This document shows, one piece after another, positions 3,350 through 44,208 of a stretch of 64,000 bases of DNA. How positions within the stretch are numbered: position 1 is the first letter of the stretch; each line of letters opens with the position of its first letter. Where the stretch lies: NCBI GenBank assembly GCA_002269645.1, contig NIVC01001581.1, forward strand, positions 1 through 64,000. The letters are read 5' to 3'. The notes below the pieces were generated by a model. The model saw nothing but the letters and a program-made list of their open reading frames with translations, searched no databases and had not been told where the DNA came from. This DNA is from Macrostomum lignano (lineage: Eukaryota). Position numbers and translations under genes: made by a program.

Positions 3350-3984
3350 TACATGGACCCTCCTTATGGTGGAACACTACTCTTCAATCTTATTTCTCTT
3401 CTCTAATCTATCATCTTTCCTCTTTTCTCTTATATCCTCTTTATTCTCTCTTCTCTTATCTACTCTCTCTTTTCCTTTCTCCTCTTCTTTATGCTCTTTT
3501 GTGTCTCCTCTCTTTTCTTTTCTGATCTAGTCTATCACCTCCTCTCTCTTCTTATCTCTTCTTTTCTCTCATCTCTCTCCTTGTTTAGTTTTTTTCTACT
3601 CTTCTATCTTTTCTTTCAATGCATTTCTTGCCTTTCCTCTGTTGGTTCATATCTAATTTAAAATTAATCAACTATTCTCCTTTAAAATGAGAAAATTACT
3701 TCAAAATTACTGCTAAACTGAATCAAGTTATTGAATTGCTAATCTAGAAATGCCAGAAAAAAATGCTAGAAAAATAATAACATTAGAAAAATATAGAAAA
3801 AATAAAGCAGGAAACGAAAAAGCCAAACCAAATGATTGACCAATTCCAATTTAATATATCTTTAAGGCTTAAAAACTTTTATAATAGACAAAATAATAAA
3901 ACTGACAGATAACCAGATTTTTCATAAATATGAATAGACAAAAAGGTGGCTTCAAAATGTAACAAATGAAATCAGTAATAAATA

Positions 3985-4283
3985 CATACATGCGCAACAG
4001 TCGGCCGAGTCGGCCGATCCAGCCAACCGATTTGGCGGCCAACCAAGAAAGTCGCAAAAATGCCCACCCGAAAAAATAATCAAGTAGTAGTACTAAGTAG
4101 CTGACGAGGCATTTTGGCTTAATAGGACAGTCATAGTTACTTCTGCCGTTTACCCAAAGTTGCGTTAATTTTGCTTTAGGGTTTTTTTTACATGTAAGTC
4201 GCATTTTTGGCCAAAAACTACGTCGCATTTTTGTTAAAACTAAGTCGCATGGCCGACCGAATTTCAGAGGTTGCGCATGTATG
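3985..4283. mobile_element. hAT-type MITE family 1 (TIR CATACATGCGCAAC), copy A, carrying the 28S rRNA-derived cassette (4092-4155, minus)
   Basis: Perfect 14-bp TIRs, perfect 8-bp TSD AATAAATA (3977-84, 4284-91), repeated AAGTCGCA subterminal motifs. Confidence 0.9.
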
Positions 4284-4944
4284 AATAAATATAAGTAATA
4301 GCTTTAAAAATTTAGTTATTTCAATATAGATTAAAGATATAGGCTATTTACCTAAAGTATCTCAGGTAAGTAAGGAAAAAAAGGCCTAACACAATTGATT
4401 TAAATAGTTATATGAGAATATTTCAAAATTTATATTTCTGGTGCTGTTTTCTATTCTATAGAATTTGTTTCTAGCAAAAAATGAGAAATTTATAATTTAG
4501 GAAATAGCATTTAAAAACAAAAATTCTCTGAAGAAATGTAGAAGGGCCTATGTTTATTCCTAGAAAATTAGTATGTTTCCGCGAAATTAAATTCCCGCCA
4601 AAATAACAAGTACTGTATGATTTGTTTTAATTCGTAAATTTGTTTTACTGAATAATATTTTGTTTTAATGATGCGAATAATTTGTTTTAGCTATTCATTT
4701 GTTTTAATGTTAGATACATAAGCCAATGAAACAAGACTCTAACTAGTATAAATACAAGGCCAAAATAAAACGAAACCTCGAACTCGACCTCGACCTTTCG
4801 GGTTCCTAACTCAGTTAACAGGAAATTAAGATTTCTTGGTTCTTCTGAATTAGTCATTTGAAGCAGTATTGCAGACTAAGTTACCGTGTTGGATAGCAAG
4901 AGTGTTTTGCTAGTACAGTGATAGGCAGGGATTGCCAGTAAAGA

Positions 4945-8330: not shown

Positions 8331-8877
8331 ATCTATCATAGAAAGAAGCAGAGACAAGAGGTCAGAGTTTGCTAATATATGTTTTCAAAAAACATTGCCT
8401 GATATTCTGTGCAATATCCCAGCTAATGAGATCAGTGCTTACTTAAAATATTATTTTTGGACAATTTTTTTCATTTTATTTTTATGTCTATCTTAACTAT
8501 TAACAAGTCTTTTGTTTGAATATGATTTCAGATTTTGAATACATACAGAAATTGTTCCTGGGGACCTGGGATTAGAATTCCACAGGTTCAAAATCTGTGG
8601 GTTTCAATGGCTTGTGCTTGTACAGAAACTAGTTTGTTTCTAGAATTAAAACTCTAAAAAAGGAAAATAATGTTTCAAAATATTTCTTTGGAAACTCCAA
8701 AGTAAAAATACTAAAAGTAGGAGGCCATATAGGAACCTGTGGCCTAACAGGGAACAGGGGGGGGGGGCTTAGCCTTTCTCCCTCCCTAGGGCCCATTAGA
8801 CACCATTCCCAATTGGTTCTAACTAATTTGGTAACAGAGATTGACATGCCATAGTCAAGAAGGTGTCTAGTATACAC

Positions 8878-9156
8878 CCTGATTGCAGCGCATGGGCATT
8901 TTGGCGGACGGCGTCCGGCGCGGATCTAATACAGCGCGGCGCGGCGCGTACGACGAGCAGCGATTAGTACGGCGCGGCGCGGTACTAATTAGATGCCGAG
9001 GCATTTACGCTTGATAAGACAGTCATAGTTACTCCTGCCGTTTACCCAAAACTGCGTTAATTTTGCTTTAGGGTTTCTTTCACAGGTAAGTCATTTCACA
9101 GCGTGGCGCAGGTTGTGTAGGCGTCTGGCGTACTTAAGCCATGCGCTGCAATAGGG
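8878..9156. mobile_element. hAT-type MITE family 2 (TIR CCYKATTGCAGCGCATGG), copy D; 28S cassette 8984-9047, minus
   Basis: 18-bp near-perfect TIRs, perfect 8-bp TSD GTATACAC (8870-77, 9157-64), CGGCGCG subterminal repeats. Confidence 0.9.
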
Positions 9157-10221
9157 GTATACACTAGAGTTTTCTATCCCAAGTATGTCAAAAAATTGGA
9201 AATGTACATAAAAAATTCTATACAAAATGTGCAACCTCGGTTCTTATAATAATGGACCTTTTTTGTTGCAACAATAAAAATTCTTTTTTGCATTGCAACA
9301 TTTGGTAGTTTGCATATGCAATATAACAAAATGAATATTATGTCTATTTCGCATTTATGACAACTTGCCATTGCAGAAAATTTTGATACCTTATTTCTTT
9401 AGAATAATATTATTGCATTTAATTAAGATTTTTGTATTTTGTTGGCACTCCCTTTATCTCTTAACCACAACCTTTTTTCCAAAATATACTATTTTTTACC
9501 AAAATACCAAATAAAGCTAAGTAAATTTTAGGCAAATATTTCTAATAAAGCTAGCATTTTTCTTTGCTATGGGCATTTGACATTTGATATATTAATATGC
9601 TAGGTAGTTATTCAAATACAAAACATTGTTTTTTATAATAAATGTCAATTCAATTATTAATTTAATATTCTTATAGTTATGAAGCCCAATTTTGATAATC
9701 TGAGTTCCTCCAACTAGCTTTAGCTTTAGGTTAGTTAGAACCCTATAAGGCTTCAATTTATATGTATTAAGGATCTTCTTAGTTCAATATTCCTGTCTTA
9801 AAACTACTTGTAATTTAAACTACAGATACTAGAATACCCCTAGAGATTGACCACTATAGTTTATACTCAGCAAAACAGCTTTCTACTTTCAGTTCAATAG
9901 CAATGAAAAATACATAAGCTATTTTATATGAATAAAGGCAGCTGACTTTGATAAGTTTAGAATCATAAGCTTGCAAGTGTAAACAACTTGCCATAATGTA
10001 CATAAGCCACTGACATGAACATGGTAGATTTAGGCTGGAATGACTGATAAATTAATCAAAAACTATAGATACAGATGTCTATAACACTAGAGAAATTAGA
10101 AGAGGCATTTAGAAAAAAAATTAATTGGCTGTCCCACTTACAAGTTACATATTCAACTAGTTCTATAAATCTTTATATGCAAATCTGTTAGATTTCTGAG
10201 TTTTGCTGTTGAACCTATATC

Positions 10222-10432
10222 CATACATGCGCAACCCCCTGATCTACACTGGCCATGCAACTTACTTTTTTTACCAAAAATGCAACTTACCTGTGAAAGA
10301 AACCCTAGAGCAACATTAATACAATTTGGGAAAACGGCAGGAGTAACTATGACTCTCTTATAATTTTTGCGACTTACCCCTGGTCCACCACAATTTACGG
10401 TGGCCAGATTGGCCAGCAGTTGCGCATGTATG
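10222..10432. mobile_element. hAT-type MITE family 1, copy B, internally deleted; 28S cassette half (10328-10360, plus)
   Basis: Perfect 14-bp TIRs and perfect 8-bp TSD CCTATATC (10214-21, 10433-40). Confidence 0.9.
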
Positions 10433-10661
10433 CCTATATCTATCTCACAACTTATTTACTTTTTAAAAACAAGGTATATATTTGTTAGCTTAGTCACTAA
10501 GGCAAAAAATAGATATTTGCCATTTAAAGAATATATTACATAAAATTGTAATTTATGAGTTTATGATTTGTCAGTTCCAATAAATATTGTAATGATCTAA
10601 GTTTAGTTTCATAGTGAAAAGTTTCAATAAGTAAGTATTAATAAGGTTGATTTTTGAGTAT

Positions 10662-16288
<5,627 letters not shown>

Positions 16289-17482: not shown

Positions 17483-18275
17483 CTGTTGATGTACATCTGC
17501 CCCATTATCGATCGGCACCAACCCCAGCCTATCCAATGTACATCTGCCACATTATCGATCGGCTCGGCTCCCACCCCAGCCTACCCAATGTACATCTGCC
17601 CCATTATCGATCGACACCAACCCCAGCCTATCCAATGTACATCTGCCACATTATCGATCGGCTAGGCTCCCACCCCAGCCTACCCAATGTACATCTGCCC
17701 CATTATCGATCGACACCAACCCCAGCCTATCCAATGTACATCTGCCACATTATCGATCGGCTCGGCTCCCACCCCAGCCTACCCAATGTACATCTGCCCC
17801 ATTATCGATCGGCACCAACCCCAGCCTATCCAATGTACATCTGCCACATTATCGATCGGCTCGGCTTCCACCCCAGCCTACCCAATGTACATCTGCCCCA
17901 TTATCGATCGGCACCAACCCCAGCCTATCCAATGTACATCTGCCACATTATCGATCGGCTCGGCCCCCTCCCCAGCCTACCCAATGTTAGATCCCCATTA
18001 TCGATTGGCTCCCACCCCAGCCTTCCCAATATACATCTGCCACATTATCGATCGGCACCAACCCCAGCCTCCCCAATGTACAACTACCCTATTATCGATC
18101 GGCTCCCATACCAGCCTCCCCAATGTACATCTGCCACATTATCGATCGGCACCACCCCCAGCCTCCCCAATGTACATCTACCCCATTATCGATTGGCTCC
18201 CATACCAGCCTCCCCAATGTACATCTGCCACATTATCGATCGGCACCACCCCCAGCCTCCCCAATGTACATCTGC
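17483..18275. repeat. Minisatellite with alternating 47- and 52-bp monomers (99-bp higher-order unit)
   Basis: GTACATCTGCCCCATTATCGATCGGCACCAACCCCAGCCTATCCAAT alternates with GTACATCTGCCACATTATCGATCGGCTCGGCTCCCACCCCAGCCTACCCAAT. Confidence 0.92.
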
Positions 18276-19483
18276 TTTTTTATCTTGGTCTCTTCCCAAA
18301 TACTATTTCCTATTCCTAGAAATAAATGCGAGCTCGCTAATGGTTCAGTTACTACCATGTATACTAGTTTCGAATAAGTAAGTAGTATAATATTTTGTTT
18401 ATTATAAAAAAGCTCCGGTGTGCAGTTCTATAGCAACTAATTGCTTCGAATAGTCAAGTTATATACTACTCATAGTTTGTAGTAAGTATGTACGTTTTTT
18501 AAGCCGCTATGCGTTGAAATATTACTGCTGACTCCAATTGATTGATAGATTCATAGCAAATTTATTAAGTGAATAAGAATGAATTTATATTTTATATTCC
18601 TCTCCCATCTCCGCATGTCTCTAGGTGAACTTTTGATTAATATCTGTTTTACATTGACATTTTTGCCCTTCTAACACCTGCTATTGGCTTTTTATTTATG
18701 CTTTGCGAGCCTTTGCCGAATTTCCGAGGGCATGATTAGAATTTGCTCGATTTAGTAGTACTACAGTCTTTTGTTAATTAAAACGTACAAATCTATTTAT
18801 TTATTTATTAATCTACATAATATACATTTTACTTGTAGAATATTGTTGTTATAGTTAATACCGCTTTTGTTTACCCACTTATTATCATCTATTAATGTAT
18901 TCTTTTATGTTGTCGTTCGTTTTTTAAGCTAAAAAGTTCATCCAACAGTATGCAAATGAAATTATCTATTATAATTTTATTAATATTCGATAAATATAAA
19001 ACTACAGCAGCGCACTTTTAATGCTTTCTTTTTTCTTTTGTGTTTGCAAGTCGTCAGCTGAGTCAGCTGACTATTAAATTTTGTTTTAACTGATGCTGAG
19101 TTCTTTGAGTTCTTAGAATTTTTTTCATTAAATGAATATTCGCTCAATTTTCACCAAGTTTAGCAACATCAAGTGAGTTACTATGGGACAGTGGCTCTAT
19201 CGCATTTTTAATGAGGCAGTAGCCACACTGAGAAAAGGCGGAGATGCGTACAGATCTACTCATTAAGTAAGAGTTTATGCAATGTTAGATACTGGAAAAA
19301 ATATGAGCAGCTCAATGTTTAACTCGAGGTGTCGTTGCTTATATATACAATATAAGATCTATGCAAACAGCTGCAGTAGAAAGATGTGATTCGTAGGCAT
19401 TCTTGCCTCGAGGCATTCTATTCTGGACTACTCATAAAGATCCAGCTTCATAGGTGTAAATACTTTGAAAGGCAAAGGCTGGC

Positions 19484-22400
19484 CTGGCATCGGCAGGCTG
19501 AACGCTAGTGTCGGCGGCGGGCGCCGCCAGCAGCTGGTCGGTGCGCCGAACGTGCCGCCCCTGCTCCGAGTCGACGGTGCTATTTCGGTTGCCAGCACTC
19601 TCGATGACGCCCTCCACCCAGCTCGGCGAATCGCCGGCCCTTGCGCCGACGCTGTAGTCGCGGAAGAGGACGCGGTCACCTGGCTGGAACTCGCGCGCGG
19701 GCCGCCGCTCCTGCAGCAGCCGCTCCTGTCGCTGCTGCACATCGCTGGCCAGCGAAGGCTTCAGGAGATCCAGGCGGCCACGGAGCCGCCGGCCTATGAG
19801 CAGCTGTCTGGGAGCGACACCGCTGACGCTGTGCGGGCCGGGTGTTGCTGTAAGAGGGCAGCAGCCGCTGCAGCCGCGCGTCGAAGTGGACGTTATTGAG
19901 CAGGTGCCGCTTGAGCACCTGGACGAAGCGCTCGGCCTGGCTGTTCGTGGCAGGATGAAACGGCGCCGAGAAGATGTACCGAATGATGCCGTTGGCCTTG
20001 GTAAACTTTGCGAACTCGGCAGAGGCAAATCGAGCCCCGTTGTCGGACACCAACGTGCGAGGGATGCCTTGGCTGTCGCGATGGGGGAGGTCGCCGTGGC
20101 GCTGCGCATCTGTTGCACCTCCGGCCACTTGCTGCGAGCGTCCACCACCACCAGATACACGTAGCCGTTGACGGGCCCGGCGAAGTCGACATGGAGGCGC
20201 TCCCAAGGCTCTGTCGGGAATGGCCACGACTATACCGGTGCCTTAGCCTGGTTAAGCTGGAAGGTGCGGTAGGCCTTGGCCGCAGCTTCCAGATCGCTGT
20301 CGATGCCTGGCCACCAGACATAGCTGCGGGCAAGAGCACGCATCCTGCTGATGCCGGGATGCGCCTGGTGCAGCTCCTGCATCACTCGCTGTCGCAGCGC
20401 CGTCGGTACCACGACCTGGCGCCCCAGAGGACACAGCTCTGGTCGACCAATAGCTCGGACTGTCGGCGGGCGAAGTCGATGAGGTCGGCACTGATGGACT
20501 CACCGGCCTGCAGACAGCGCAGCACGCGGCCCAGCGTTGCGTCCGTCCTGGTGTGCGCGAGACTGCTTGCGCTGTGATGGCAAACCCTGCGCCCTTGTCG
20601 AGCAGGAGCGAGTTGACAGCCGCCTCCTCCTCAAACAGCTGCGGTAGCGGCAGCCGCGAGAGCGAGTCGCAGTTGGCGTGCTTCTCTGTCGGCCGGAACT
20701 CCAGCGAGTAGTCGTAACTCGCCAGGCGGATGGCCCAGCGCTGCATGCGCGCGGCTGCGTGCGCGGGGATGGCCTTGCGCTCGCCCAGCAGACCCAGCAG
20801 CGGCAAGTGGTCGGTGACGATGGTGAACCGGCGGCCGTAGAGGAACTGGTGGAAGCGCTGCAAGCCGAACATGATGGTCAGCGCCTTCTTGTCTATAGCT
20901 GCGAGTAGCCGCGTTGAGCTGCCGTTAGGCTGCGGCTGGCGAAGGCGACCGCGCAGTCCTTGTTGCCGATGCGATGAGTCAGCACGACACCCAAGCCGTA
21001 GGGTGAGGCGTCACACTCCAGGCGTAGAGGCAGGTCCGGGCTGTAGTGCACGAGCACCGGTGACTGAAGTAGCAATTGCTTCGCCTCGTCAAACGCCCGC
21101 TGCTGCGGCTGCTCCCCGGTCCAGCACGTGTTCTTGGCCAGGAGCTGGTGGAGCGGTGCCAGCACGGTGGACAGGTTTGGCAGAAACTTGCAATACTGTG
21201 CCAACATGCCGAGAAACGAGCGCAGCTGGCTGACATCTTTTAGAGCCGGCGCATCCTGGACGGCGGAGACTCGATCAGGCAGCGGACTGAGGCCGTTGGC
21301 GTCGATGCGATGGCCCAGATACTCGACGGAGTCCTTGAAGAACTGGCACTTGTCTTTGTTCAGGCGAAGGCCAGCGCCCTGCAGGCGATGCAGGACTAGG
21401 GCCAGGTTATTTTTGTGCTGCTGCAAGGTGCCGCCCGTGACGAGGATGTCGTCGACGAAGACCTGGACGGCGTCGAGGCCCCCCAGCAGGGTGTCCAGCG
21501 TCCGCTGAAAGATGGCGCTGGCGCTGGTGATGCCGAAAGGCATGCGGTTTAGCTGGAAAAGTCCTCTTGGCGTGTTGATGGTGAGGAAGGCCTTGCTCGG
21601 ACAGGTCCAGCTTGGACCACTTGCAGCCACCGCCGAGCTTGGCGAAGAGGTCCTCGATGCGTGGCAGCGGGTAGTGCTCCGTCTTGCTCGCCGCGTTGTA
21701 AGTGAGTTTGTAGTCAGCGCAGATCCTAACGCTGCCGTCCTTCTTCACCACTGGCACAATGGGTGCCGCCCAGTTGCTGTGCTTGACCGCCTTGATGATT
21801 CCGCTGGCCTCCATGCACTGCAGCTCGGCGTCCACACGTTCCCGCAGCCTTCGGTGACCTGCAACCGGACTTGGCCATGCTGAAATTCTCCCAGGCCGTC
21901 CTCGAAGACAGAGGAGAACTCCTTGATGAGGTCCCCGACGCCGTCGTCTGCAGAGACGGAGTGGACCTGCGCCATGATGCTCGGCCAGTTCAGCCGCAGT
22001 CTGGCCAGCCAGTCGCGCCCAGCAGCGGGGTGTCGCCCTGCGTGACGACAAGCAGAAGGAGCTGCAGCTGCTGACCGTCGAGCTGGAAGGTGACGGACGC
22101 CTGGCCGATGGGGCGAAATCGCTGAAGGTGCGCAGGATAGCTGCGGACGGAGACAGATGCAGCGACGGCAACAGCTTCTACTGCAGGCTCTGCGGGATCA
22201 GAATGACCGCAGATCCAGATAACGAATAACGAATAACGAATCGGCACTGCTGTCCGTTAACCTGCAGCTGCACCGTCGGGCCTGCGTTGCTTCCAGACGG
22301 CTGAACAGCGAAGATTGGCATCTGAGCGGAGTTGCAGCTTGGCCGAGCGGCCAACCTTACGGATGTGGCCAGTCTTGCCACAGGCGTGGCACTTGGCGTC

Positions 22401-22979
22401 CCGCAGCTTGCACTGCTGGCGGCTGTGGACGCCGCCGCAGCTTCCGCAGGCGCCACCTCGTGCGATGACTTTTCTGCAGACTCCAAGGAGAGAATTTTCT
22501 GCTGCAGAGATTTAAAGGTGGGCTTCACCTCCTCCAGCAGTTTCACTCGGAAGGTGTCATTGAGCAGGCCGAAGACAAGCTGGTCTCGGAGCCGCTCCTC
22601 CATAGTGTTGCCAAAGTTGCAATGGGCCGACAAGGCCTTCAGACCGGCGATGAACTCTGCGAAGGTCTCGCCCGGCTGCTGCAGACGACGCTGGAAGCGA
22701 AAGCGGGCTGCCAGCTCAGATGGCTGTGAAGCGTAGTGATTACGCATGACGATCTCCGTTAGCTCATGGAATGACTTGTCTGCCATCTTTTTGGGAAGAC
22801 AGAGGTTGCGCAGCACTGAATAGGCTTCCTCGCCAATTGCTGTGACTCGTGTAGCCACCTTAGCCTCATCCTTCACCTCTGCAGGTGAACTAGTGTTGGA
22901 GTCTCTCCAGATACACGTCGATATCTGTGTTCGCGGAGAGAATTGGGATGCCTTCCAGAGCGGAACTCGTCGTCGCCAT
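19484..22979 (-). pseudogene. Gypsy gag-pol (gag, protease, RT, RNase H, integrase) with stops and frameshifts
   Basis: Fragments in shifting frames: gag (RFRFQRRLQQPGETFAEF..LRDQLVFGL), RT (WAAPIVPV.K.DGSVRICADYK; MPFGITSASAIFQR; VFVDDILV), RNase H (CDASPYGLG; AYQRGYSQL-like), integrase (HVDFAGP; IPRTLVSDNG; PFHPATNSQAERFV). The protease DSG site is overwritten by a TTCGTTA triplication at about 22222-22242. Confidence 0.93.
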
Positions 22980-23017
22980 TGTGATAACTTTGAAAGGCAA
23001 AGGCTGGCTTGTAGCAC

Positions 23018-25061
23018 CACAGATACTATAAACACTAGATAGGCCACTCAGGCTAATTTTCTGGGCAAGTTTTTTATTCTACTTTCTGCTTAGTAGCAAT
23101 GAAAGGAAGCAACAGTATTATTTGCTAAATTAGACAAATCGAGTGACTGTTTTTAAGACATCGTTTTGCTAACGCCATAAACAACTAACTTGTTTTGTGC
23201 AGTAATGGTGTACATTAAGACGCGACAGACAGTGTGCAATGCCGCTATCTTTCAAAGTGGAGGAAGGGGGGTAGTCTGGAATAGGGTTAATATCAGTTTC
23301 GTATAAGGCAGGGTGAGTGGATCGATAATTTAGGCCTACTGGTGGTGGGATAGAAAATAAAGGACTGCACATAGCTAGCCTGGGTTAGGGGTGGGGTGGG
23401 GGTTGAGAGGTTGTGGGTTAGAAAATTTGGGGGTGGCGAATCGTGCTTAAATACAAGCTTATATAGATGAACAGGACAAGAGTCAGAGTTAAAGAAAGTT
23501 CGAGTGCATACTAGCTTTTCTATCTAATCTTGTACTCGAGAAATGTTTTGATTCGAACCACTGCTGTGCTCCCACTTGCACGAGCTTTGTACTAGTGCTA
23601 TTAACATCCGAGAAAGAAAAATCCGTTGCGAATGCATAAATTACCAAAAGATGACACTGGCGAAGCGCTGGCAGCAGCTACTACAGGAGCGTGGATATTG
23701 ATCTTTATAAACAATTAAATCACGGGGCCTCCGTGTGTTCAGCTTGCACTTTATGGACGAGGCCTACTGCTGCCTTACAAAGTGCCACGGATGTGCAAGA
23801 CATCTGTTTTCGCTGGGACGCAATCCCACACCAAGAGTTGATGCTGCCTCGGCTCGTTCAAATAGACCAGCTACCCTCTGTGCAAAGGACTGATAAACGA
23901 TGAAGAGGCAGACGACATGTACCCTCCAGTGCTGGGGCCAATTAGCAATCTATCTGCAGCCGAGCCTGCGACTTGCCTGCTGCCAGTGCTGTGGCAGAGC
24001 AACCTTCGGCTACCAGATTCTGCGCCGAGAACAGCTGTTGCGGCTGAAAGCTCTCACCTCTGCAGCCGATTCGCGGGTTCCAAGCGCTAGAGGCAAAGAT
24101 CAAGCGGCTGCAGCAACGATCCCGAAAGTGACAGGCGAATCAAGCGGCTGCAGCGGCAATCCCGAAAGTGACAGGCGAATCAAGCGGCTGCAGCGGCAAT
24201 CCCGAAAGCGACAGGCAAATCAAGCGGCTGCAGCGGCAATCCCGAAAGCGACAGGCAAATCAAGCGGCTGCAGCGGCAATCCCGAAAGCGACAGGCAAAT
24301 CAAGCGGCTGCAGCGGCAATCCGAAAGCGACAGGCAAATCAAGCGGCTGCAGCGGCAACTCTCGATGGTCAAGGCAAGTGCAGCGCAGTCGTGCATCCAT
24401 GGACTGTGGAGGCGTGGCTAGCGCAGCTTCCAGCGGTCGACTGGGCGGCAGGGCGCTCGCAGTCAGGGGTGCTCTGGTCAAAGGATGTCATCTCATCAGC
24501 AGCTCATTGCAGCTGCACCACAAAAGTCCTGCTGCTTATCGGCTGCCTGTTACGAAACCACTGAGGATTGGCTCCATCGGATACATCCCTGGACCTTGAA
24601 GTGGCGCATTCGCCAGTTTTTTTCATCTGTTGGGCCGTTCTGAATGCTGCCTCTGAACAAGGGCGACTGGCGACCCTGTTCTTCGACAGCACGCTGCGAG
24701 TTTCACAAACAGATGAGCTGATTAAGATGAGAAATCTTTCTATTTTGCTTCACGAATATGGATTATGGAGTATATGATATAGCTCGTATTTGCTAAATAT
24801 ACAATAGTAGACTGCAATAATATAGCCTTCTATGCAATCTAAAGCATTCACAATGTTGCTTTGAATTGTGGAAAGTATAATTATAAGTTTCTTTTTGCAA
24901 AAAATCAATACAATTGCTGCATTGCATTCATCTGTTTTTTTATTTTAAAAAAATATAAATAACGCTAAAATGTTTTTACTACTACTAAGCAGAAAGTAGA
25001 GTAAACTGTCGTGTTGTGAAAATTAGCTGGAGTGGCCTATCTAGTGTTTATAGTATCTGTG
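23018..25061 (+). mobile_element. P-superfamily (Galileo-like) THAP DNA transposon, internally deleted, inserted in the Gypsy 5' LTR
   Basis: TIR CACAGATACTATAAACACTAGATAGGCCACTC at both ends, with looser similarity to about 80 bp. Perfect 7-bp TSD GTAGCAC (23011-17, 25062-68). Broken THAP domain (HCCAPTC, HKLPKD, KRWQQ, VCSAHF, WDAIPT; 23559-23830), coiled-coil repeats, and transposase motifs WSKDVI, SPAAYRL and TLFFD. Confidence 0.88.
24100..24358. repeat. 39-bp tandem repeat inside the P-like element
   Basis: CAAGCGGCTGCAGCGGCAATCCCGAAAG(C/T)GACAGGC(A/G)AAT, about 6 copies. Confidence 0.9.
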
Positions 25062-25657: not shown

Positions 25658-28641
25658 ATGCTCGAGCCGCAAGATATTGACACGCTGGCCTCAACACCCA
25701 GAAACAGTGTCTCTGACGGCTGCGCAAGATGTGAGCAACTCGCCGGGCCGATGGGCCATTGCGCCCAGCACACCACAGTCGAAGGCCTGCCAAATTTACT
25801 TACAGCTGGCAGTCTGTGGCGGAAGATAGTGTGGTCAGTGATCCTGCTGATGGCTCTGGCCTGCTGCACTACCCACTTAATCTTGCTAATTATTGACTTC
25901 CACAACAGCGGCGTCGCCTCGACTATGATGCTGAACGAGAACGTGGTTGAATTCCCTGACCTCACAATCTGCGGATTGAAGCCCATCTCCGAGAGCTTCT
26001 TGGCCCAGTCCTTTGAACGCAACTGGACTGACTTGCTTCTTCACTACACGCGTCGCCTGGACGGCTGGTTCAACGATGAGTCCTCTTTGCAGAGAAGAAA
26101 CGAATCTATAACGGACTACATGGAGAGGATGAAGGCTCTGTACTACAAGATGTTTGAGATAGTCAGGCTTGACAAGACTTTCCTTGACTCTTGGCTGAGT
26201 ATGCACTACCAAAGCAGCATATTTAGCTGCAGATTCAAGCGTTTACCCTGCGAACCAAGCAATTTTAGTCTAATCCAGCACCACCATCACTTTGACTGCC
26301 TCACTTTTAGTCCGTCAGAAAGCAACAAGATGGCCGATCATGGGTCTAAATTTAACTCCATCCTGCTCATAAATCTCTTCACTGACAGCAGCATTTTCGA
26401 ATCCCACTATCAGAAACACGCCGCGTATAAAGCATCTTCAAAGACCTACTACGACAAGGGCCTGTCGCTGACCGAGTATCTAACCACCAATCCGGAGGAA
26501 TTCCCGCTTAACCAGATCCTAGCAAATAATGAACAGCCCAATGGAATTAGTGCGATACTGCATCCGAGGAACACCTATCCGTTTAATGGTATGGGCTAAT
26601 AGGTGTTACAGATTATCGAGCATTATACTGTATTCTCTATTATCAACAAGCATTTTTACCTATAGTCAAAGATGGCGTGGCCCTGCCAGCTGGAGTCAAC
26701 AGCTTCGCCCCTTGACTTATCTCGAGGTCGATTTCAAGCGAGTCTGTCAGAGTCTTGCAGGGCCTTGTACTGCAGAGCTGCCTACCTCTATGAGTCGTCT
26801 GGCACGTGTAGCACTGCTTGTTGAGACCATTAGGCTGACGCTCTACTCTCTGCATGATGTATTCTATACCCTCGACTATACGCTCTGTCGAAGATATGTA
26901 CTGTCCAAGATAGTATAGACTATACTGTCTAATTCTACTCTACTCTTCATTATACTGTACTCTACTCTAATCAATACTAACTGCAATCCATAACACTCCA
27001 ACCCGCAGGCTACCAGTCCTACATCATTGCGTCGGGCACCTCAGCCACATTTCGAATATCAACTTTGGAGAAGCACAAGCTGAACTACAAAGGCAGGGAG
27101 CGGTGCTCCGACAAGCCACCTGACGAGGTTGTTTACAGAACGGTGCGTTCGGTCGTCAACGGAACCAGCGAAAGTCGAGCCTTTGTCCGCTCACCTGAAG
27201 ACGATCTGTACACTTGGGCTCAAGCAGAGCTGTTCAAGAAGTGCGGCTGCCGCTCTCACCGGAGCCCCACCGGTGCCAGCTCCTCCAGCCTCTGCTATCA
27301 CGTCCAGCCCGATGAAGACGGCGCCCCTCGACCGACGCTGCCCAAGGAGGCTCTAGACAGGATCCGCTGTCACGACAGATGGTGGTCTAAATTATTGAAC
27401 TCGGCGCCTAATCACGTGACCATGTGGAAACCCTGCCATTCTGTGTCCAGAGAAGTGCAGTTAGAAAGCTTAGACTGGCCCAGTGACGAGGACCTCATGC
27501 CCATTGCTGTATCGTTTATCAAAATGCGCCAGCGGAATGCTCAACACCGGGACGAATACGCGGTACCGAGTTGGAACAGCTCACTGACTGCTCGAACCAC
27601 TTACCTGCGAGATTATTCGGCTGTGCATTCGTTGAGTAGGGACAGCGAGTCCCTGACTAAATTATTGAAAGAAAGCATGCCAAAAGCCGCAATAGCTCTC
27701 AATACCCAGAAGGTCAAGGAAAATGTTGTCAGACTGGTTGTTAGGCTGGAGTCGCCTTACAGCATTGCTTACACGGAGTCCTTTACCTACCAATGGTTTG
27801 AAATCTTGTCAGAGGTAAGTTGTAGGACTAATTACAATGCGGTTAACAGTCCAACTTAAACTAATTGCATCTTCATCACTTTGAGTCTCTAGGAATTTAT
27901 CACTCTGGGAATTTGTCACTCTGGCTCCATGAATCAGGATTGTGTGAATCTGGGTCTATGTGAACCGGGACTATGTGAATCTCTATCTATGTGAATCAGG
28001 ACTGTTTAAATCTTGAATATGGGAGTTGGAGCTGTGCATTTCGTCTATGTGAATCGGGGCTAAGTGAATCTGGGACTAAGTGAATCTGGGACTAAGTGAA
28101 TCTGGGACTAAGTGAATCTGGGACTAAGTGAATCTGGGACTAAGTGAATCTGGGACTATGTGAATCTGGGACTATGTGAATCTGGGACTATGTGAATCTG
28201 GGACTATGTGAATCTGGGACTATGTGAATCTGGGACTATGTGAATCTGGGACTATGTGAATCTGGGACTATGTGAATCTGGGACTATGTGAATCTGGGAC
28301 TATGTGAATCTGGGACTATGTGAATCTGGGACTATGTGAATCTGGGACTATGTGAATCTGGGACTATGTGAATCGGGACTATGTAAATCGGGACTATGTA
28401 AATCGGCCTCTACCCATTCCAGATCGGAGGAATTCTCGGCCTGTGGTTTGGCGTCAGCCTCATCACCGGATTCGAGTTGATCGACCTGATCTGGCTCATA
28501 GCCATCTGGGACAGTCAAGTTGGCCATGTGAAGCGGTCAGATAGGGAGGACGTGAAACAGTTAGAGAAGTTGGGAAGTGCTCTGCAGAACGAGAGGGTTC
28601 CAGAGTTTTTTACCTCCGGCTGTTCGATGTATATCGAATGA
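25658..28641 (+). CDS. DEG/ENaC (amiloride-sensitive sodium channel family) subunit, 3 exons
   Basis: Exons 25658-26588, 27009-27814 and 28423-28641 join in frame at GT-AG sites. Motifs: TT.EG..N followed by TM1 (WRKIVWSVILLMALACC), FPDLTIC, CRF...C, CLTF, GISAILHP, CGC, PC...WP, and TM2 LSEIGGILGLWFGVSLITGFE with the GxS filter. Confidence 0.9.
28040..28405. repeat. 16-bp minisatellite in DEG/ENaC intron 2
   Basis: Unit TGTGAATCTGGGACTA. Confidence 0.95.
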
Positions 28642-29189: not shown

Positions 29190-30082
29190 ATTCCAAACTG
29201 CCATAGAGCTGCTGCCTCATTATCCAAACTGCCATAGAGCTGCTGCCTCATTATCCAAACTGCCATAGAGCTGCTGCCTCATTATCCAAACTGGCATAGA
29301 GCTGCTGCCTCATTATCCAAACTGGCATAGAGCTGCTGCCTCATTATCCAAACTGCCATAGAGCTGCTGCCTCATTATCCAAACTGCCATAGAGCTACTG
29401 CCTCATTATCCAAACTGGCATAGAGCTGCTGCCTCATTATCCAAACTGGCATAGAGCTGCTGCCTCATTATCCAAACTGGCATAGAGCTGCTGCCTCATT
29501 ATCCAAACTGGCATAGAGCTACTGCCTCATTATCCAAACTGGCATAGAGCTGCTGCCTCATTATCCAAACTGCCATAGAGCTACTGCCTCATTATCCAAA
29601 CTGCCATAGAGCTGCTGCCTCATTATCCAAACTGGCATAGAGCTACTGCCTCATTATCCAAACTGGCATAGAGCTGCTGCCTCATTATCCAAACTGGCAT
29701 AGAGCTGCTGCCTCATTATCCAAACTGGCATAGAGCTGCTGCCTCATTATCCAAACTGCCATAGAGCTGCTGCCTCATTATCCAAACTGCCATAGAGCTA
29801 CTGCCTCATTATCCAAACTGCCATAGAGCTACTGCCTCATTATCCAAACTGGCATAGAGCTGCTGCCTCATTATCCAAACTGCCATAGAGCTGCTGCCTC
29901 ATTATCCAAACTGCCATAGAGCTGCTGCCTCATTATCCAAACTGGCATAGAGCTACTGCCTCATTATCCAAACTGGCATAGAGCTGCTGCCTCATTATCC
30001 AAACTGCCATAGAGCTACTGCCTCATTATCCAAACTGGCATAGAGCTACTGCCTCATTATCCAAACTGCCATAGAGCTACTG
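29190..30082. repeat. 31-bp minisatellite
   Basis: Unit CTG(C/G)CATAGAGCT(G/A)CTGCCTCATTATCCAAA. Confidence 0.95.
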
Positions 30083-30689
30083 TATTTAATACGAATAATA
30101 AAAGGCTTGGTTTAGGATTTAAAAAAGAGTGAATGGAATTCCAAGTGTTAATTTAATTTTTCTTTTTGTTTAAAGTGTCCTTCAGTTAATATTTATGACT
30201 TTTGCCAAGGCTTATATGGCTTATAGGGGCTTTTTCGGCCGTAGGTTGGCTCTGACAGAAGCAGTTAGTGCAGATTAGGCAGATGGGATCATTGGATTAT
30301 ATGGATGGCTAGGGGAAGCCAGCCTGCCAGCCACATGGGAAAGAATTTTAAGTGCCCCAGGCGCCAGAACCATTAGCAATAGGTTTGGACGGATGTGAAG
30401 AGCACCACCCAATGCAGCTGTTGCCCGCCTTCCGTGCGGTTTTGCAAGAACAAAATGTGTCAGTGGAGCGGGGCTTTACAGCGGACTGGTTAACCCAAGT
30501 GCAGTGTAGTTTGGCTCACACGGATTCACAATACAGTTTGATGTTTCGATTTCAAAGTTATCGAGTGCTGTGCACAGCTAGTGAGGAGACAGCAAGCGCT
30601 GAGCAAGCACATGCTCACACGGTGTACAGCGGCCCTGACTATCTAATCAACAGGCATGTACACTGTCTGTGCTATAGGGGTTGGCCTAA

Positions 30690-31860
30690 GGGGCAGACTG
30701 AGAGATAGACAGGGATAGGCAGGGAGAGATAGGGAGACACGGGAGAGATAGAGAGAGACAGGGAGAGACAGGAAAAGAGGGGGAGACAGGGGGAGACAGG
30801 GAGAGACAGGGGGAGACAGGAAGAGGGGGAGACAGGGGGAGACAGGAAGAGGGGGGAGACAGGAAGAGAGGAGGGAGACAGGAAGAGAGGGGAGACAGGG
30901 GGAGACAGGGAGAGACAGGGAGAGACAGGAAGAGGGGGAGACAGGAAGAGAGGGGGAGACAGGGGAGACAGGGAGAGGGGGGAGACAGGAAGAGAGGGGG
31001 AGACAGGAAGAGAGGGGGAGACAGGGAGAGACAGGGGGAGACAGGAAGAGGGGGGAGACAGGAAGAGAGGAGGGAGACAGGAAGAGAGGGGGAGACAGGG
31101 GAGACAGGGAGAGACAGGGAGAGACAGGAAGAGGGGGGAGACAGGAAGAGAGGGGGAGACAGGGGGAGACAGGGAGAGACAGGGAGAGGGGGAGACAGGA
31201 AGAGGGGGAGACAGGAAGAGAGGGGGAGACAGGGAGAGACAGGGGGAGACAGGAAGAGGGGGGAGACAGGAAGAGAGGAGGGAGACAGGAAGAGAGGGGG
31301 AGACAGGGGGAGACAGGGAGAGACAGGGAGAGACAGGAAGAGGGGGAGACAGGAAGAGAGGGGGAGACATGGAGAGACAGGGGGAGACAGGAAGAGGGGG
31401 GAGACAGGAAGAGAGGGGAGACAGGGAGAGACAGGGGGAGACAGGAAGAGAGGGGAGACAGGGGGAGACAGGGAGAACAGGGAGAGGGGGAGACAGGGAG
31501 AGACAGGGGGGAGACAGGAAGAGGGGGAGACAGGAAGAGAGGGGGAGACAGGGAGAGACAGGGGGAGACAGGAAGAGGGGGGAGACAGGAAGAGAGGAGG
31601 GAGACAGGAAGAGAGGGGGAGACAGGGGGAGACAGGGAGAAACAGGGAGAGACAGGAAGAGGGGGGAGACAGGAAGAGAGGGGGAGACAGGGGGAGACAG
31701 GGAGAGACAGGGGGAGACAGGAAGAGGGGGGAGACAGGAAGAGAGGGGAGACAGGGAGAGACAGGGGAGACAGGAAGAGAGGGGAGACAGGGGGAGACAC
31801 AGGGAGAGACAGGGGGAGACAGGAGGAGACAGGGAGAGACAGGGAGAGAGAGACAGAGAG
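30690..31860. repeat. Purine-rich GGGAGACAG-based satellite
   Basis: Direct reading; part of the spurious 800-aa ORF. Confidence 0.93.
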
Positions 31861-31869
31861 AAAGGACCA

Positions 31870-32590
31870 GGAGAGCAGTGAGAGAAGAGAGGGAGAGTCG
31901 GGAGCGGTGTGAGAGCAGTGAGAGAAGAGAGGGAGAGTCGGAGCGGTGTGAGAGCAGTGAGAGAAGAGAGGGAGAGTCGGGAGCGGTGTGAGAGCAGTGA
32001 GAGAAGAGAGGGAGAGTGGGAGCGGTGTGAGAGCAGTGAGAGAAGAGAGGGAGAGTCGGGAGCGGTGTGAGAGCAGTGAGAGAAGAGAGGGAGAGTCGGG
32101 AGCGGTGTGAGAGCAGTGAGAGAAGAGAGGGAGAGTGGGAGCGGTGTGAGAGCAGTGAGAGAAGAGAGGGAGAGTCGGGAGCGGTGTGAGAGCAGTGAGA
32201 GAAGAGAGGGAGAGTGGGAGCGGTGTGAGAGCAGTGAGAGAAGAGAGGGAGAGTCGGGAGCGGTGTGAGAGCAGTGAGAGAAGAGAGGGAGAGTCGGGAG
32301 CGGTGTGAGAGCAGTGAGAGAAGAGAGGGAGAGTGGGAGCGGTGTGAGAGCAGTGAGAGAAGAGAGGGAGAGTGGGAGCGGTGTGAGAGCAGTGAGAGAA
32401 GAGAGGGAGAGTCGGGAGCGGTGTGAGAGCAGTGAGAGAAGAGAGGGAGAGTGGGAGCGGTGTGAGAGCAGTGAGAGAAGAGAGGGAGAGTCGGGAGCGG
32501 TGTGAGAGCAGTGAGAGAAGAGAGGGAGAGTGGGAGCGGTGTGAGAGCAGTGAGAGAAGAGAGGGAGAGTCGGGAGCGGTGTGAGAGCAG
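31870..32590. repeat. ~40-bp purine-rich minisatellite
   Basis: Unit GGGAGCGGTGTGAGAGCAGTGAGAGAAGAGAGGGAGAGT(C). Confidence 0.95.
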
Positions 32591-33934: not shown

Positions 33935-34752
33935 TCCTGTCTCCCTCTCACTGTCTCCCTCTCACTGTCTCCCTCTCACTGTCTCCCTCTCACTGTCTCC
34001 CTCTCACTGTCTCCCTCTCACTGTCTCCCTCTCACTGTCTCCCTCTCACTGTCTCCCTCTCACTGTCTCCCTCTCACTGTCTCCCTCTCATTGTCTCCCT
34101 CTCACTGTTCTCCCTCTCACTGTTTTCCCTCTCACTGTCTCCCTCTCACTGTCTCCCTCTCACTGTCTCCCTCTCACTGTCTCCCTCTCACTGTCTCCCT
34201 CTTGCTGTCTCCCTCTCACTGTCTCCCTCTCACTGTTCTCCCTCTTGCTGTCTCCCTCTCACTGTTCTCCCTCTCACTGTCTCCCTCCCACTGTCTCCCT
34301 CTCACTGTTCTCCCTCTTGCTGTCTCCCTCTCACTGTTCTCCCTCTCACTGTCTCCCTCTCACTGTCTCCCTCTCACTGTCTCCCTCTCACTGTCTCCCT
34401 CTTGCTGTCTCCCTCTCACTGTCTCCCTCTCACTGTCTCCCTCTCACTGTCTCCCTCTCACTGTCTCCCTCTCACTGTCTCCCTCTCACTGTCTCCCTCT
34501 CACTGTTCTCCCTCTCACTGTCTCCCTCTCACTGTTCTCCCTCTCACTGTCTCCCTCTCACTGTTCTCCCTCTTGCTGTCTCCCTCTCACTGTTCTCCCT
34601 CTCACTGTCTCCCTCCCACTGTCTCCCTCTCACTGTTCTCCCTCTCACTGTCTCCCTCTCACTGTCTCCCTCTCACTGTCTCCCTCTCACTGTCTCCCTC
34701 TCACTGTTCTCCCTCTTGCTGTCTCCCTCTCACTGTTCTCCCTCTTGCTGTC
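33935..34752. repeat. 14-bp pyrimidine-rich minisatellite upstream of the clarin-like gene
   Basis: Unit CTGTCTCCCTCTCA. Confidence 0.95.
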
Positions 34753-34938
34753 TTCGTCTTATTTTCACTTTTCCACCTCAGTCTCACTAGTTGCCTATTA
34801 AATTCACTCAGTCTCGCTCAGTTAGAATTACGCAATAACATCAGACTGCTTCAATTTCAAGTTGCAGAATCGTTGGCAAACAGCAGACGCAATCCAGATT
34901 GGCCATTAAAACCGGCAAAAATTATCAGTAAATCAGCA

Positions 34939-37900
34939 ATGCGATTCAACCAAGTAGCCTGGGCAATGTACTGCTCAGCGTCTGTCAGCAATCTGGTCGG
35001 TCACTGCCTGCTCATGGTCATCGGAATTGTGCAGCAGTTCTGCACCGTTGCCATCGGCCTCAATCCAGCCAGCAATATTCGCAGAGCGAACTGGCAGATC
35101 GGCGTGTTCAGCTCTCAGGTGGTGCTGGACATCGCCGACGAGAGAAGCAAACGGGTGCTCATTCCTGGCAGCGCTGTGGTGCATGGTGAGGCTGGAGACT
35201 GATAGGCAGATCTGCAAGGGTGAGGTTGAGAGGGAGAGGGAGAGGAGTGAGAGATTGAGAGATTAGTGATTTGGTGAGGTTGAGAAGGAAAGGGAGAAAG
35301 AGGGGTGAGAGGGATGTGAGAGGGAGAGGGGAGGGTGAGATTGAGAGGGAGAGGTGAGAGGAGAAACGGAGGAATGTGAGTGACAAGGAATGAGACGGGA
35401 AACCGCGAAATTGAGTATAAGAAAGAAAAGAAAAGATCGAGTGAGAGACTCCAAAGCAGGGAGCTTTCAGGGTATAAGTACAGCTGAGCAGGTTGATGAA
35501 GCTGATTTTATTGCACCAGCAATGGCCATATGAAAACTGGTCTGGCTTCGAGTTCCGCCGAGAAATTCCCGGCAAAAAATCTAATAGTCACAAAGTTCCA
35601 CTTGCGGAGTGGGATAGAAAAGTTATTCTCAGTCTGCAGGAAATTCCTGCCTCTTCCCGTTTGATCGGTAGAAGCAACTCCAAGAATACTCCTCTAGGAG
35701 CATTGCTGGCAACTGGTAAAGAACGAATCATATCGCGTACTTTTATTGGGCGACTTCTCGACATAGCAGTAGGAGGTTAAGAGACTGAGTGAAACTTACT
35801 GAATAGAGATTGCAACCTACAGAAACTTACTGAAAAGAGGTTGCAACCTACAGAAACTTACTGAAAAGAGATTGCAACCTACAGAAACTTACTGAAAAGA
35901 GGTTGCAACCTACAGAAACTTACTGAAAAGAGGTTGCAACCTACAGAAACTTACTGAATAGAGATTGCAACCTACAGAAACTTACTGAATAGAGATTGCA
36001 ACCTACAGAAACTAACTGAATAGAGATTGCAACCTACAGAAACTTACTGAATAGAGATTGCAACCTACAGAAACTTACTGAAAAGAGGTTGCAACCTACA
36101 GAAACTTACTGAATAGAGATTGCAACCTACAGAAACTAACTGAATAGAGATTGCAACCTACAGAAACTTACTGAATAGAGATTGCAACCTACAGAAACTT
36201 ACTGAATAGCGACTGCAACCCACAGAAACTTACTGAATAGCGATTGCAACCTACAGAAACTTACTGAATAGCGACTGCAACCCACAGAAACTTACTGAAT
36301 AGCGACTGCAACCCACAGAAACTTACTGAATAGCGACTGCAACCCACAGAAACTTACTGAATAGCGATTGCAACCCACAGAAACTTTCTGAATGGCGATT
36401 GCAACCTACAGAAACTTACTGAATAGCGATTGCAACCTACAGAAACTTACTGAATAGCGATTGCAACCTACAGAAACTTACTGAATAGCGATTGCAACCT
36501 ACAGAAACTGACTGAATAGAGATTGCAACCCACAGAAACTTACTGAATAGAGATTGCAACTAGAGATTGCAACCTACAGAAACTTACTGAAAAGAGGTTG
36601 CAACCCACAGAAACTTACTGAATAGAGATTGCAACTAGAGATTGCAACCTACAGAAACTTACTGAAAAGAGGTTGCAACCCACAGAAACTTACTGAATAG
36701 AGATTGCAACTAGAGATTGCAACCTACAGAAACTTACTGAAAAGAGGTTGCAACCTACAGAAACTTACTGAATAGCGATTGCAACCTACAGAAACTTACT
36801 GAATAGCGATTGCAACCTACAGAAACTTACTGAATAGCGATTGCAACCTACTTAGCTGCAGGGCTGTCCCGGAGGGGACACAGCGGGAAGGCGCGGGCGC
36901 CCATTCCGCTAAGATTTTCCGCTATGATTTCCGCTAAGATGTTCCGCTAATATGATTTCCGCTAAGATTGCAACCTACAGAAACTTACTGAATAGCGATT
37001 GCAACCTACAGAAACTTACTGAATAGCGATTGCAACCTACAGAAACTTACTGAATAGAGATTGCAACCCACAGAAACTTACTGAATAGAGATTGCAACCC
37101 ACAGAAACTTACTGAATAGAGATTGCAACTAGAGATTGCAACCTACAGAAACTTACTGAAAAGAGGTTGCAACCCACAGAAACTTACTGAATAGAGATTG
37201 CAACTAGAGATTGCAACCTACAGAAACTTACTGAAAAGAGGTTGCAACCCACAGAAACTTACTGAAAAGAGGTTGCAACCTACAGAAACTTACTGAATAG
37301 CGATTGCAACCTACAGAAACTTACTGAATTGAGATTGCAACCTACAGAAACTTACTGAAAAGAGGTTGCAACCTACAGAAACTTACTGAATAGCGATTGC
37401 AACCTACAGAAACTTACTGAATTGAGATTGCAACCTACAGAAACTTACTGAAAAGAGGTTGCAACCTACAGAAACCCTGTTTGTCAATCTCCACCAGACC
37501 GAATCGAGTGGCGCACCGCGGCGGTGACCCTGGGCCTGTCGCTGGCCCTGTCCCTCTGCAGTCTGGTCTGCCATCTGGCCGTTGTGCTGTCAACCCGACT
37601 GCGGGTCTCATTTCGCGCAGTGTCAGCTGACGCGGGACTCCAGCTGACCGCCGTGGTGACCCAGATCCTGTGCCTCGCCTCCGGCGAGATCGGCATGAAG
37701 CGCCTGGCAGCTGAACCGGAGAGCCTCAACGCCGCGTTGGAGCAGTTCGCCCGAGCTGGCAGCCCGCTGGGACCCGAGGAGGTCACCGAAGTTGGTCGAG
37801 GCTTCGCATTCTGGTTGCTAGTAGCAACGGTGTTTGTTCATTTAACCAGCCTGCTGTGCGAGATTCCCTACGCCATCCTGCTTGGCGAGCTGTTGCTTAG

Positions 37901-39105: not shown

Positions 39106-40321
39106 GGCATGATAACTTTGAAAATTCATTTGATTTACGTTGTTTAAAGTTTAGTTGCAGTAATAAGTCTGCAATTAAAATTTAAAGTTTGCGGAATTAT
39201 ATTGAGTTTATTACTTTTCCTGTGCACAGTATTAGTGCGCTTGTATGTGCTCAGGGAGACAGCGGAATGGTTGCGGATGTATGTCGCGGAAGGCGTTACG
39301 CCTTACGAGTACGAGTGCATGTGCATACGACTACTATATAGGTGATGATAGGTGCTAAATGTGTTATTTAAGACTGGTGAGCTGCACTCGCAGTCAACTG
39401 CGCACTCGTATAAACAAAAACATGTTATGATTTTACCACTTCAACTTCAACAGCGTTCAGTTCCGCTAGGAAAATCAACCCATCAGATTTTCGATACTTT
39501 GTCTTTTTTGAGCTCTACGAGTAAAAAGGCGAAATTACATGAAAGGTTAAAAAACATCGGAGCTCGTCTTCCTGAGGACTGAGCTGCCAGACCCAGCTGC
39601 CAGAAAATACGCAAAAGGATGTCACGCAAACAGAAGCATCGCATGCAACCGTGCTCATGAGCTAAATTATTTTCTTGCCATTATTTCAACAGTCACTTTG
39701 ATTTGAGCAGCGAAATTGGATTTTTTCCAGAAACTTTTGCGACTTCCACCGAGTCACGTTTAAGCCTGTATGATGATTCTGTATTCTATCTGATAGACAC
39801 ACAGGAGTCTTATAATTGAAGTTCAATGATTGAATCGCTGTTATGACTCAAAGTTCAATGATAGAATAACGTGACTAAGTACAGTTGCAGAACATCTAGC
39901 TACATCTAGCTGGTTTCATGGAAAAAATTTCTGGTCGCTTTGCAAAGAAATAATTAAAGTGTATGTTGAGAAACAGAAACTACCTGCAACACAACTCTGT
40001 TTTGAATTTGACGCTGAATAGTGTTGTGAAGAATTTATTTTGCTACCTTATACAATTAAACAAATTCAATCGAAGTCAATTTGGTTGGTTGGTTGGAACA
40101 AAAATCAATTTTTCACCATGATTCACAGAATATACACAGAATGCCGATTCGAGCATTTTTGTTTAAAAAATCGGTGCAAGAATTGAAATCACACCAGCCT
40201 ACTCTTGTTGTGAAGCTTTGATAATTAGGGCTTGAGTTTTTGCCATAGACTATTCTAAGAGCGACTTTTATTCTTTGCTTTCAAATGAAAATGAAGTTCA
40301 GTCCGAGCTTTTCTGCGCAGC

Positions 40322-44107: not shown

Positions 44108-44116
44108 TTGTAAGAC

Positions 44117-44175
<59 letters not shown>

Positions 44176-44208
44176 TACTAAGACAGACAGACAGACAGAC
44201 ACAGACAC

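Follow-up and report, generated by a model that had tools for sequence, protein, structure and literature searches.

Small non-coding DNA transposons in the 64,000-nucleotide stretch of Macrostomum lignano DNA analysed here (the window, 64 kb) carry a decayed cassette that derives from the 28S rRNA gene. We consider it likely, at a probability of about 70%, that this 28S fragment was captured a single time and has since been hitch-hiking as a passenger in MITEs. The elements are miniature, non-coding cut-and-paste transposons making 8-bp TSDs, and comprise at least two families and a relic. The initial annotation had proposed that one hAT-type family of DNA transposons captured, and is dispersing, a piece of an rRNA functional centre. 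Capture within elements bounded by TIRs and TSDs is upheld by our analysis; the single family, the hAT assignment and the functional centre are abandoned.

Two MITE families and a relic within 64 kb

The first family, F1, is represented by three copies in the window (F1a, F1b and F1c; coordinates of whole elements are given without strand). It is defined by the TIR CATACATGCGCAAC and by a subterminal motif, ATGCGACTTA, present in several copies. F1a, the element from which the initial annotation started, measures 299 bp (3985-4283). The perfect 14-bp TIRs and 8-bp TSD attributed to it are confirmed: CATACATGCGCAAC (3985-3998) and GTTGCGCATGTATG (4270-4283) are complementary at 14/14 positions, and AATAAATA is found on both flanks (3977-3984 and 4284-4291). 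F1b (59786-60083) is an old copy with 86% identity to F1a, two TIR mismatches relative to F1 at one end and one at the other, and a degenerate TSD (TATACCAA on one flank, CACCACAA on the other). F1c (10222-10432) is reduced to 211 bp by an internal deletion; its F1 TIRs are perfect (10222-10235 and 10419-10432), as is its TSD, CCTATATC (10214-10221 and 10433-10440). A solitary 13/14 match to the F1 TIR (CATACATCCGCAAC) lies on the minus strand at 39270-39283 with no partner TIR close by, and is either a chance match or the end of a longer or broken relative.

The second family, F2, has two copies in the window, F2a (8878-9156, 279 bp; termini CCTGATTGCAGCGCATGG and CCATGCGCTGCAATAGGG) and F2b (57498-57785, 288 bp). 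They are 92.7% identical, or about 96-97% in aligned columns. Both possess perfect 8-bp TSDs, GTATACAC for F2a (8870-8877 and 9157-9164) and GCAACCAT for F2b (57490-57497 and 57786-57793). F2 termini extend over 18 bp, 16 of them matching, with a perfect 14-bp core, and the arms are GC-rich, being made of GGCGCGG repeats. The F2a insertion site is itself nearly palindromic (8866-8877 and 9157-9168; reconstructed empty site, TCTAGTATACACTAGA), so that the apparent inverted repeat of this copy reaches 12 bp past the element into the flanks.

The sixth cassette belongs to X (59697-59772, minus strand), a degenerate relic that directly adjoins F1b and, over 76 nt, shows 80-83% identity with the remaining cassettes. 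We looked for TIRs, a TSD and termini of X, and for a continuation of X past the F1b insertion, and recognised none. A possible relationship between the F1 and F2 termini was also considered: they share CATGCGC only, in opposite orientation relative to the tip, and are treated here as unrelated. The single cassette-carrying family initially described is thus replaced by at least two families with unrelated TIRs and arms, plus a relic without ends: the CATACATGCGCAAC TIR bounds the elements of only three of the six cassettes, a second MITE family accounts for two more, and the last has no recognisable ends.

F1 and F2 have the characteristics of MITEs. TIRs are present in both (14 bp in F1, perfect in F1a and F1c; 16/18 at the 18-bp termini of F2), and the TSD has a fixed length, with perfect 8-bp duplications in four of the five bounded copies, F1b being degenerate. 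The elements are short (211-299 bp) and multi-copy (three F1 and two F2 copies in 64 kb), and none of the listed ORFs of at least 130 aa overlaps them.

The label "hAT-type" had been given on TSD length only, and we do not retain it. An 8-bp TSD, as in hAT elements, is indeed observed. However, hAT termini take the form 5'-YARNG, whereas F1 starts with CATAC and F2 with CCTGA (CCCTA at its other end). As regards the hAT target preference nTnnnnAn, of the four sites available, a number too small for a judgement, GTATACAC fits both positions, GCAACCAT fits one, and AATAAATA and CCTATATC fit neither. A Pfam scan of the ten largest non-repetitive ORFs of the window detected an ASC channel, a rhodopsin-type receptor, reverse transcriptase and RNase H, gag and a helix-turn-helix, and no hAT transposase domain; no transposase partner of F1 or F2 was identified in the 64-kb window. 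TSDs of about 8 bp are also produced by P, Merlin, Novosib, Zisupton and some Mutator elements. The elements are therefore termed 8-bp-TSD MITEs, and their superfamily is left unnamed.

The surrounding DNA contains host genes, other mobile elements and many tandem repeats. Host gene exons, all on the plus strand, occur at 11280-12614, 25658-27859, 44747-46584 and 61881-62507; their products are an Ena/VASP-like protein (EVH1 and proline-rich), a member of the amiloride-sensitive sodium-channel family (ASC), a rhodopsin-type receptor and a protein with an OTUD3-like OTU domain. For the EVH1 domain, identities of 72-75% were obtained with proteins from molluscs, insects, spiders, leeches and fish. 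The OTUD3-like ORF reaches at most 43% identity to any match (42% for the best-scoring one, from Daphnia pulicaria). F1c and F2a both lie upstream of the Ena/VASP exon, within a joint range of 0.8-2.4 kb. A tRNA-Arg(CCT) gene (15515-15587, plus strand; Rfam 67.9 bits, also found by ARAGORN) is the only Rfam match of the window above the gathering score. An LTR-retrotransposon remnant occupies about 19400-23050 on the minus strand; it is GC-rich (up to 63%), and its gag-like, reverse transcriptase/RNase H and probable integrase-like ORFs are spread over several frames, the reading frame being broken repeatedly. An ORF at 41902-42417 (plus strand) gives a weak winged helix-turn-helix match (HTH_29, E 8e-6, under the Pfam cut-off) and may be what is left of the N-terminus of a Tc1/mariner-type transposase, one with no relation to these MITEs.

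The density of micro- and minisatellites is unusually high, with 36 TRF rows at a score of at least 300. Arrays are found, among others, at 10666-11275, 12656-13326, 14366-15106, 17489-18275, 29192-32590, 33937-34753, 35791-37475, 44113-44526, 49324-51185, 51835-52332 and 62498-63178. They include (TATC)167, (AGAC)104 and a strongly purine-skewed stretch of about 1.9 kb at 30.7-32.6 kb. Because of these repeats, many of the long "ORFs" of the window are artefacts.

Similarity of the cassettes to domain IV of 28S rRNA

The six cassette sites listed in the initial annotation, and no others, were recovered at the right coordinates, both with a 15-nt core pattern and in a blastn search of the window with the element as query; apart from one cassette shortened to 33 nt, all have their full length. 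The 64-nt cassette of F1a (4092-4155, minus strand) is an exact match to the pattern, the quoted 64-mer, for which 0 matches are expected in shuffles; it agrees with 28S at 51/64 positions without gaps (blastn E 1.6e-11). The corresponding values are 52/64 for F1b (59915-59978, plus strand; E 2e-12), 48/64 for X (64-mer at 59702-59765, minus strand; E 2.6e-8) and 31/33 for F1c (10328-10360, plus strand; E 1.6e-6), which retains the 5' half only. The segment of F2a, the longest and best preserved, covers 71 nt (8977-9047, minus strand) and is 84.7% identical to 28S over 72 columns (E about 1e-13), its 64-mer (8984-9047) giving 53/64 ungapped matches. The F2b segment (57597-57667, minus strand) is likewise 84.7% identical over 72 columns, and the ungapped score of 53/64 reported for its 64-mer (57604-57667) is exact. 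In F2, the likeness extends further 3' (TTAGTACCGCGC, against TTAGTGACGCGC in 28S). The consensus of the five full cassettes matches 28S at 55/64 positions; the best ungapped 28S match in 50 shuffled windows was 37/64.

The 28S string used for these comparisons, that of the initial annotation, proved correct in two papers, in metagenome contigs and in a complete rDNA unit. It is printed as the R2 target oligonucleotide or duplex in bioRxiv 10.1101/2024.11.11.623112 and in PMC13000458. More than 120 metagenome contigs contain an exact copy of a 79-mer of 28S, GGGTAAACGG...GCATGAATGG, and one of them (L079) includes a complete rDNA unit according to Rfam (LSU_rRNA_eukarya, 3033 bits, with SSU and 5.8S). 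We assembled a blastn reference of 40 28S genes from contigs with the 79-mer, 4 kb each and 160 kb in total. Against these real 28S genes, the cassettes of F1a, F1b, F2a and F2b gave significant matches, with E values from 1e-11 to 1e-14. The matches of all six copies fall at the same place of 28S and are collinear.

The Rfam model LSU_rRNA_eukarya (RF02543) aligns 8977-9047 to about model positions 2243-2314 (20-23 bits, E 0.002-0.005). This score lies far under the gathering score of 50 because only about 72 nt of the 3401-position model are present; the 28S-like piece is a fragment and not a copy of the rRNA gene. The 3' half of the consensus, AAATGCCTCGTCATCTAATTAGT, has the eukaryotic nuclear form, and not the bacterial, organellar or archaeal one. 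On these similarities, the cassette derives from the nuclear 28S rRNA gene, namely from the part of domain IV between the 3' strand of helix 68 and helix 71, both included. A search for the cassette variant in the metagenome contigs found it absent. In viral contigs, one pattern gave a chance 19-mer in a phage-like contig (L001), and two other patterns gave no match.

We also considered whether the 28S homology extends upstream of the cassette, where GTGAAAGAAA...TTAACGCAG was likened to GTGAAGAAATTCAACCAAGCGC by MAFFT and some blastn alignments. This extension was rejected: likeness of the approximately 47 nt on the 5' side to upstream 28S is at the level of shuffled sequence (p 0.5-0.95), and the Rfam alignment treats the GTGAAAGAAA...TTAACGCAG part as an unaligned insertion.

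The cassettes could in principle be ordinary rDNA debris, that is, rRNA pseudogene fragments that lie near repeats by chance, or could resemble 28S by chance. rRNA fragments are common in eukaryotic genomes, and a first Rfam scan, of 3900-4400 (F1a, a more diverged copy), gave no LSU match; the match came with the better-preserved F2a. Yet the likeness is far above chance, and end points, derived substitutions and position inside elements bounded by TIRs and TSDs are common to all copies. Besides, no other part of rDNA was found when the window was compared with 771 kb of rDNA loci, the sole other match being the tRNA. As initially claimed, the cassettes sit in TIR- and TSD-bounded non-coding elements and are not loose debris. 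This explanation is almost certainly wrong, being already refuted by the derived changes that the copies share and by their constant place in the elements.

A shared module, its derived changes and its history

F1 and F2 have only an internal module of 111 bp in common (4090-4200 in F1a, minus strand; 8982-9092 in F2a), with 88.3% identity over the 111 bp. The 28S-like piece makes up only 64-72 bp of it, the 3' two-thirds, and the remaining approximately 47 nt lie on the 5' side. Since the module exceeds its 28S part in length, by 47 nt with no likeness to 28S, what the two families have in common is a single composite piece and not the product of independent captures. The edges of the homology between the families are sharp, from about AAATG(CG)ACTTAC to TTAGTAC, and the module holds one copy of the F1 subterminal motif (ATGCGACTTAC).

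Sharp edges and three different sequence contexts would also fit a module that is a small mobile element in its own right, for instance a retroposon made from 28S or a further MITE, and that entered F1, F2 and X in separate insertions. We regard this as quite unlikely: its edges bear no TIRs, TSDs, poly-A or other terminal marks, X has only about 76 nt of it, no free-standing module occurs in the window, and the presence of the F1 subterminal motif inside the module is more in keeping with a fragment of some F1-like element. Nor was support found for a composite ("macrotransposon") that had arisen from two elements on either side of 28S, with no internal TIR remnants beside the cassette.

The 28S-like piece of F2 is followed, right after its 3' end (…CTAATTAGTAC), by a GC spacer and an inverted copy of that end. 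The resulting fold-back palindrome, ATTAGTACGGCGC / GCGCGGTACTAAT (8963-8989, and again at 57583-57609, strandless), has 13-nt arms that are 92% complementary and 1 nt apart. It is the type of scar expected from repair-associated template switching, and may be a repair or hairpin scar of the capture event. A further resemblance was considered and not established. The F1 subterminal repeat (4044-4250) loosely resembles the 3' half of the cassette (4092-4122) minus about 9 nt, and its unit GCCAAAAATGCGACTTAGT (28S sense) could have been a collapsed cassette 3' half or a capture microhomology; single units gave p values of 0.08-0.14, and a hand-made consensus gave p 0.002 against the cassette and 0.23 against true 28S.

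The cassettes share a characteristic set of changes. The five full-length copies all differ from 28S at positions 12, 28, 34-37 and 41 of the 64-mer. Their consensus has nine mismatches to 28S, of which seven are located within positions 34-41, the TTAAGGTAGCC core, where TCTTAAGGTAGCCAAAT of 28S is replaced by TCTTATTAAGCCTAAAT; seven of nine differences would fall in an 8-nt window with P about 2e-5 under random placement. The clustering in the core, together with the shared derived changes, argues for one compound mutation in one ancestor and hence for a single capture. The pattern points to a fragment captured once, in a module that would later have spread to different backbones. At position 28 of the cassette (window position 10355), F1c keeps the C of 28S (GACTCTC) and the other five copies read GACTGTC, which calls for reversal, conversion or a more complex branching.

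The copies are of different ages. CpG observed/expected ratios of 1.30 (F1a), 1.49 (F2a) and 1.36 (F2b) are read as young, that of F1c (0.51) is intermediate, and those of F1b (0.10, CpG lost) and X (0, no CpG left) are old; differences between F1a and F1b are mostly transitions. Divergence of the cassette keeps pace with that of the remaining element, with identities of 88.9 versus 86.4% between F1a and F1b and of 97.2 versus 96.2% between F2a and F2b, a comparison based on two pairs among six cassette copies in one 64-kb window. The base pairs of helices 69 and 71 are not kept, the Rfam alignment showing non-standard pairs in both stems, and two of the changes, G12A and C28G, affect the stem of helix 69. 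In F1c, the 3' half of the cassette has been lost, yet TIRs and TSD are perfect. In this small sample, these features suggest neither RNA-level nor protein-binding constraint on the cassette.

These observations bear on the possibility that the module, or its 28S-like part, is retained for a function, as a DNA-binding decoy or tether for R2-type proteins, as a source of antisense rRNA small RNAs or for the recruitment of nucleolar or ribosomal proteins, the module being a transferable core domain comparable to the central domains of SINE superfamilies. The module recurs in three contexts, two of them MITE families whose ends are unrelated, which could mean that it is favoured, and none of the F1 and F2 copies of the window lacks it. 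In addition, AACGGCAGGAGTAACTATGAC, upstream of the R2 nick, is nearly intact, and the mismatches are non-randomly confined to the cleavage core, which selection against cutting or insertion could explain. Retention for function is nevertheless unlikely, given that the cassette evolves at the pace of the element, that CpG decay runs through it, that helix 69 pairing is broken and that F1c has perfect TIRs and a perfect TSD with only half a cassette. More specifically, the endonuclease decoy suggested in the initial annotation meets the difficulty that TTAAGGTAGCC, which is the cleavage core, is the sole part that is not conserved. With 7/9 of the consensus differences in this core, the site of R2, I-PpoI and Pokey is destroyed in every copy, and a cleavable decoy for any of the three is improbable. 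The proposed rRNA functional centre or protein-binding module fares no better, in view of the non-standard pairs of the helix 69 stem and of a decay at element rate. Binding of an R2-type protein without cleavage is conceivable, the upstream stretch being nearly intact, though we found nothing in its support. A stricter version would hold that the 111-bp module is kept in unrelated MITEs because its rRNA-like part is used, through uncut binding by R2-type readers or through antisense small RNAs, the core having been mutated for immunity to insertion; this we consider very unlikely.

The passenger history that we favour would run as follows. A piece of 28S would have been copied once, at the DNA level, into an ancestral element, possibly by template switching during double-strand-break or gap repair after excision, a process known to create chimeric non-autonomous and Pack-type elements. 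The TTAAGGTAGCC core would have undergone its compound mutation in the same ancestral copy. The same kind of recombination or template switching may then have passed the composite module between MITE families, and the F1-type motif inside the module suggests that this transfer was from an F1-like element to F2. The elements would have been moved in trans by a transposase encoded elsewhere, and the fragment would since then have been without rRNA function or detectable constraint. The 64-kb window showed no F1 or F2 relative that lacks the cassette, so that capture into a pre-existing MITE is reached by inference only.

Relation to other rDNA-derived mobile elements

The initial annotation knew of no such arrangement in cut-and-paste MITEs, and our search of the literature agrees: it brought up neither a cut-and-paste MITE bearing a piece of 28S coding sequence nor the cassette string itself. 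A structural parallel is offered by transduplicating or Pack-type elements, namely Pack-MULEs and the chimeric non-autonomous hAT and CACTA elements that carry host gene fragments. There too, the TIRs of a non-coding element of the cut-and-paste type enclose a piece of a host gene, which is multiplied along with the element and was presumably acquired by template switching or gap repair. In contrast, the piece described here comes from an rRNA gene, is just 64-72 bp long and is common to families with different ends.

A 2024 review (PMC10946416) tabulates the transposon sequences derived from rDNA as Pokey/mPok, 5S-derived SINEs, SINE28, Cassandra and Ajax, and its table includes no cut-and-paste MITE with 28S coding sequence. 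Pokey of Daphnia is a piggyBac-family transposon, with mPok as its MITEs (PMC10946416). Like the elements described here, it is a cut-and-paste transposon with MITE derivatives and rDNA-derived sequence, and its link to rDNA is at the same 28S region. However, Pokey carries intergenic-spacer repeats and not 28S coding sequence, and inserts at a TTAA site of 28S with TTAA duplications. The elements of the window have 8-bp TSDs unrelated to TTAA, are located in AT-rich non-rDNA sequence and carry a mutated 28S TTAA core.

SINE28 of mammals is also a mobile element built of 28S rRNA sequence; it derives from the 28S 3' end, is transcribed by RNA polymerase III, is retroposed and has been re-derived repeatedly (PMC4994717). 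The present elements differ in carrying an internal domain IV fragment (about 2243-2314 of 3401 model positions), TIRs and fixed 8-bp TSDs, in lacking an A-tail and in the single capture proposed for them. Modules derived from 5S rRNA in SINE3, Cassandra and Ajax (PMC10946416) offer a further parallel, as rDNA modules recruited by non-autonomous elements and common to several families. Those modules provide retroelements with a working internal Pol III promoter, whereas no such function is evident for the 28S piece. The coincidence of the fragment with the region used by R2 and Pokey is partly a detection bias, since recognition across species is confined to the most conserved parts of 28S, which are also the parts that site-specific elements target.

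The finding is a modest addition to the known cases of rDNA in transposons, not surprising in principle and with no evidence of a biological role. It has practical consequences for work on this species. Repeat libraries will mask copies of the cassette or label them "rRNA"; the copies can also draw rRNA-derived reads in RNA-seq, small-RNA and rDNA copy-number analyses, and are potential off-targets for R2-based rDNA-directed tools. Pickup of rDNA by mobile elements has been known mainly from retroelements with 5S promoters, from SINE28 and from Pokey with its spacer repeats. The present case shows that DNA transposons, too, can multiply a domain IV fragment of 28S and shuffle it from one MITE family to another, and illustrates cleanly, on a small scale, how non-autonomous elements exchange modules.
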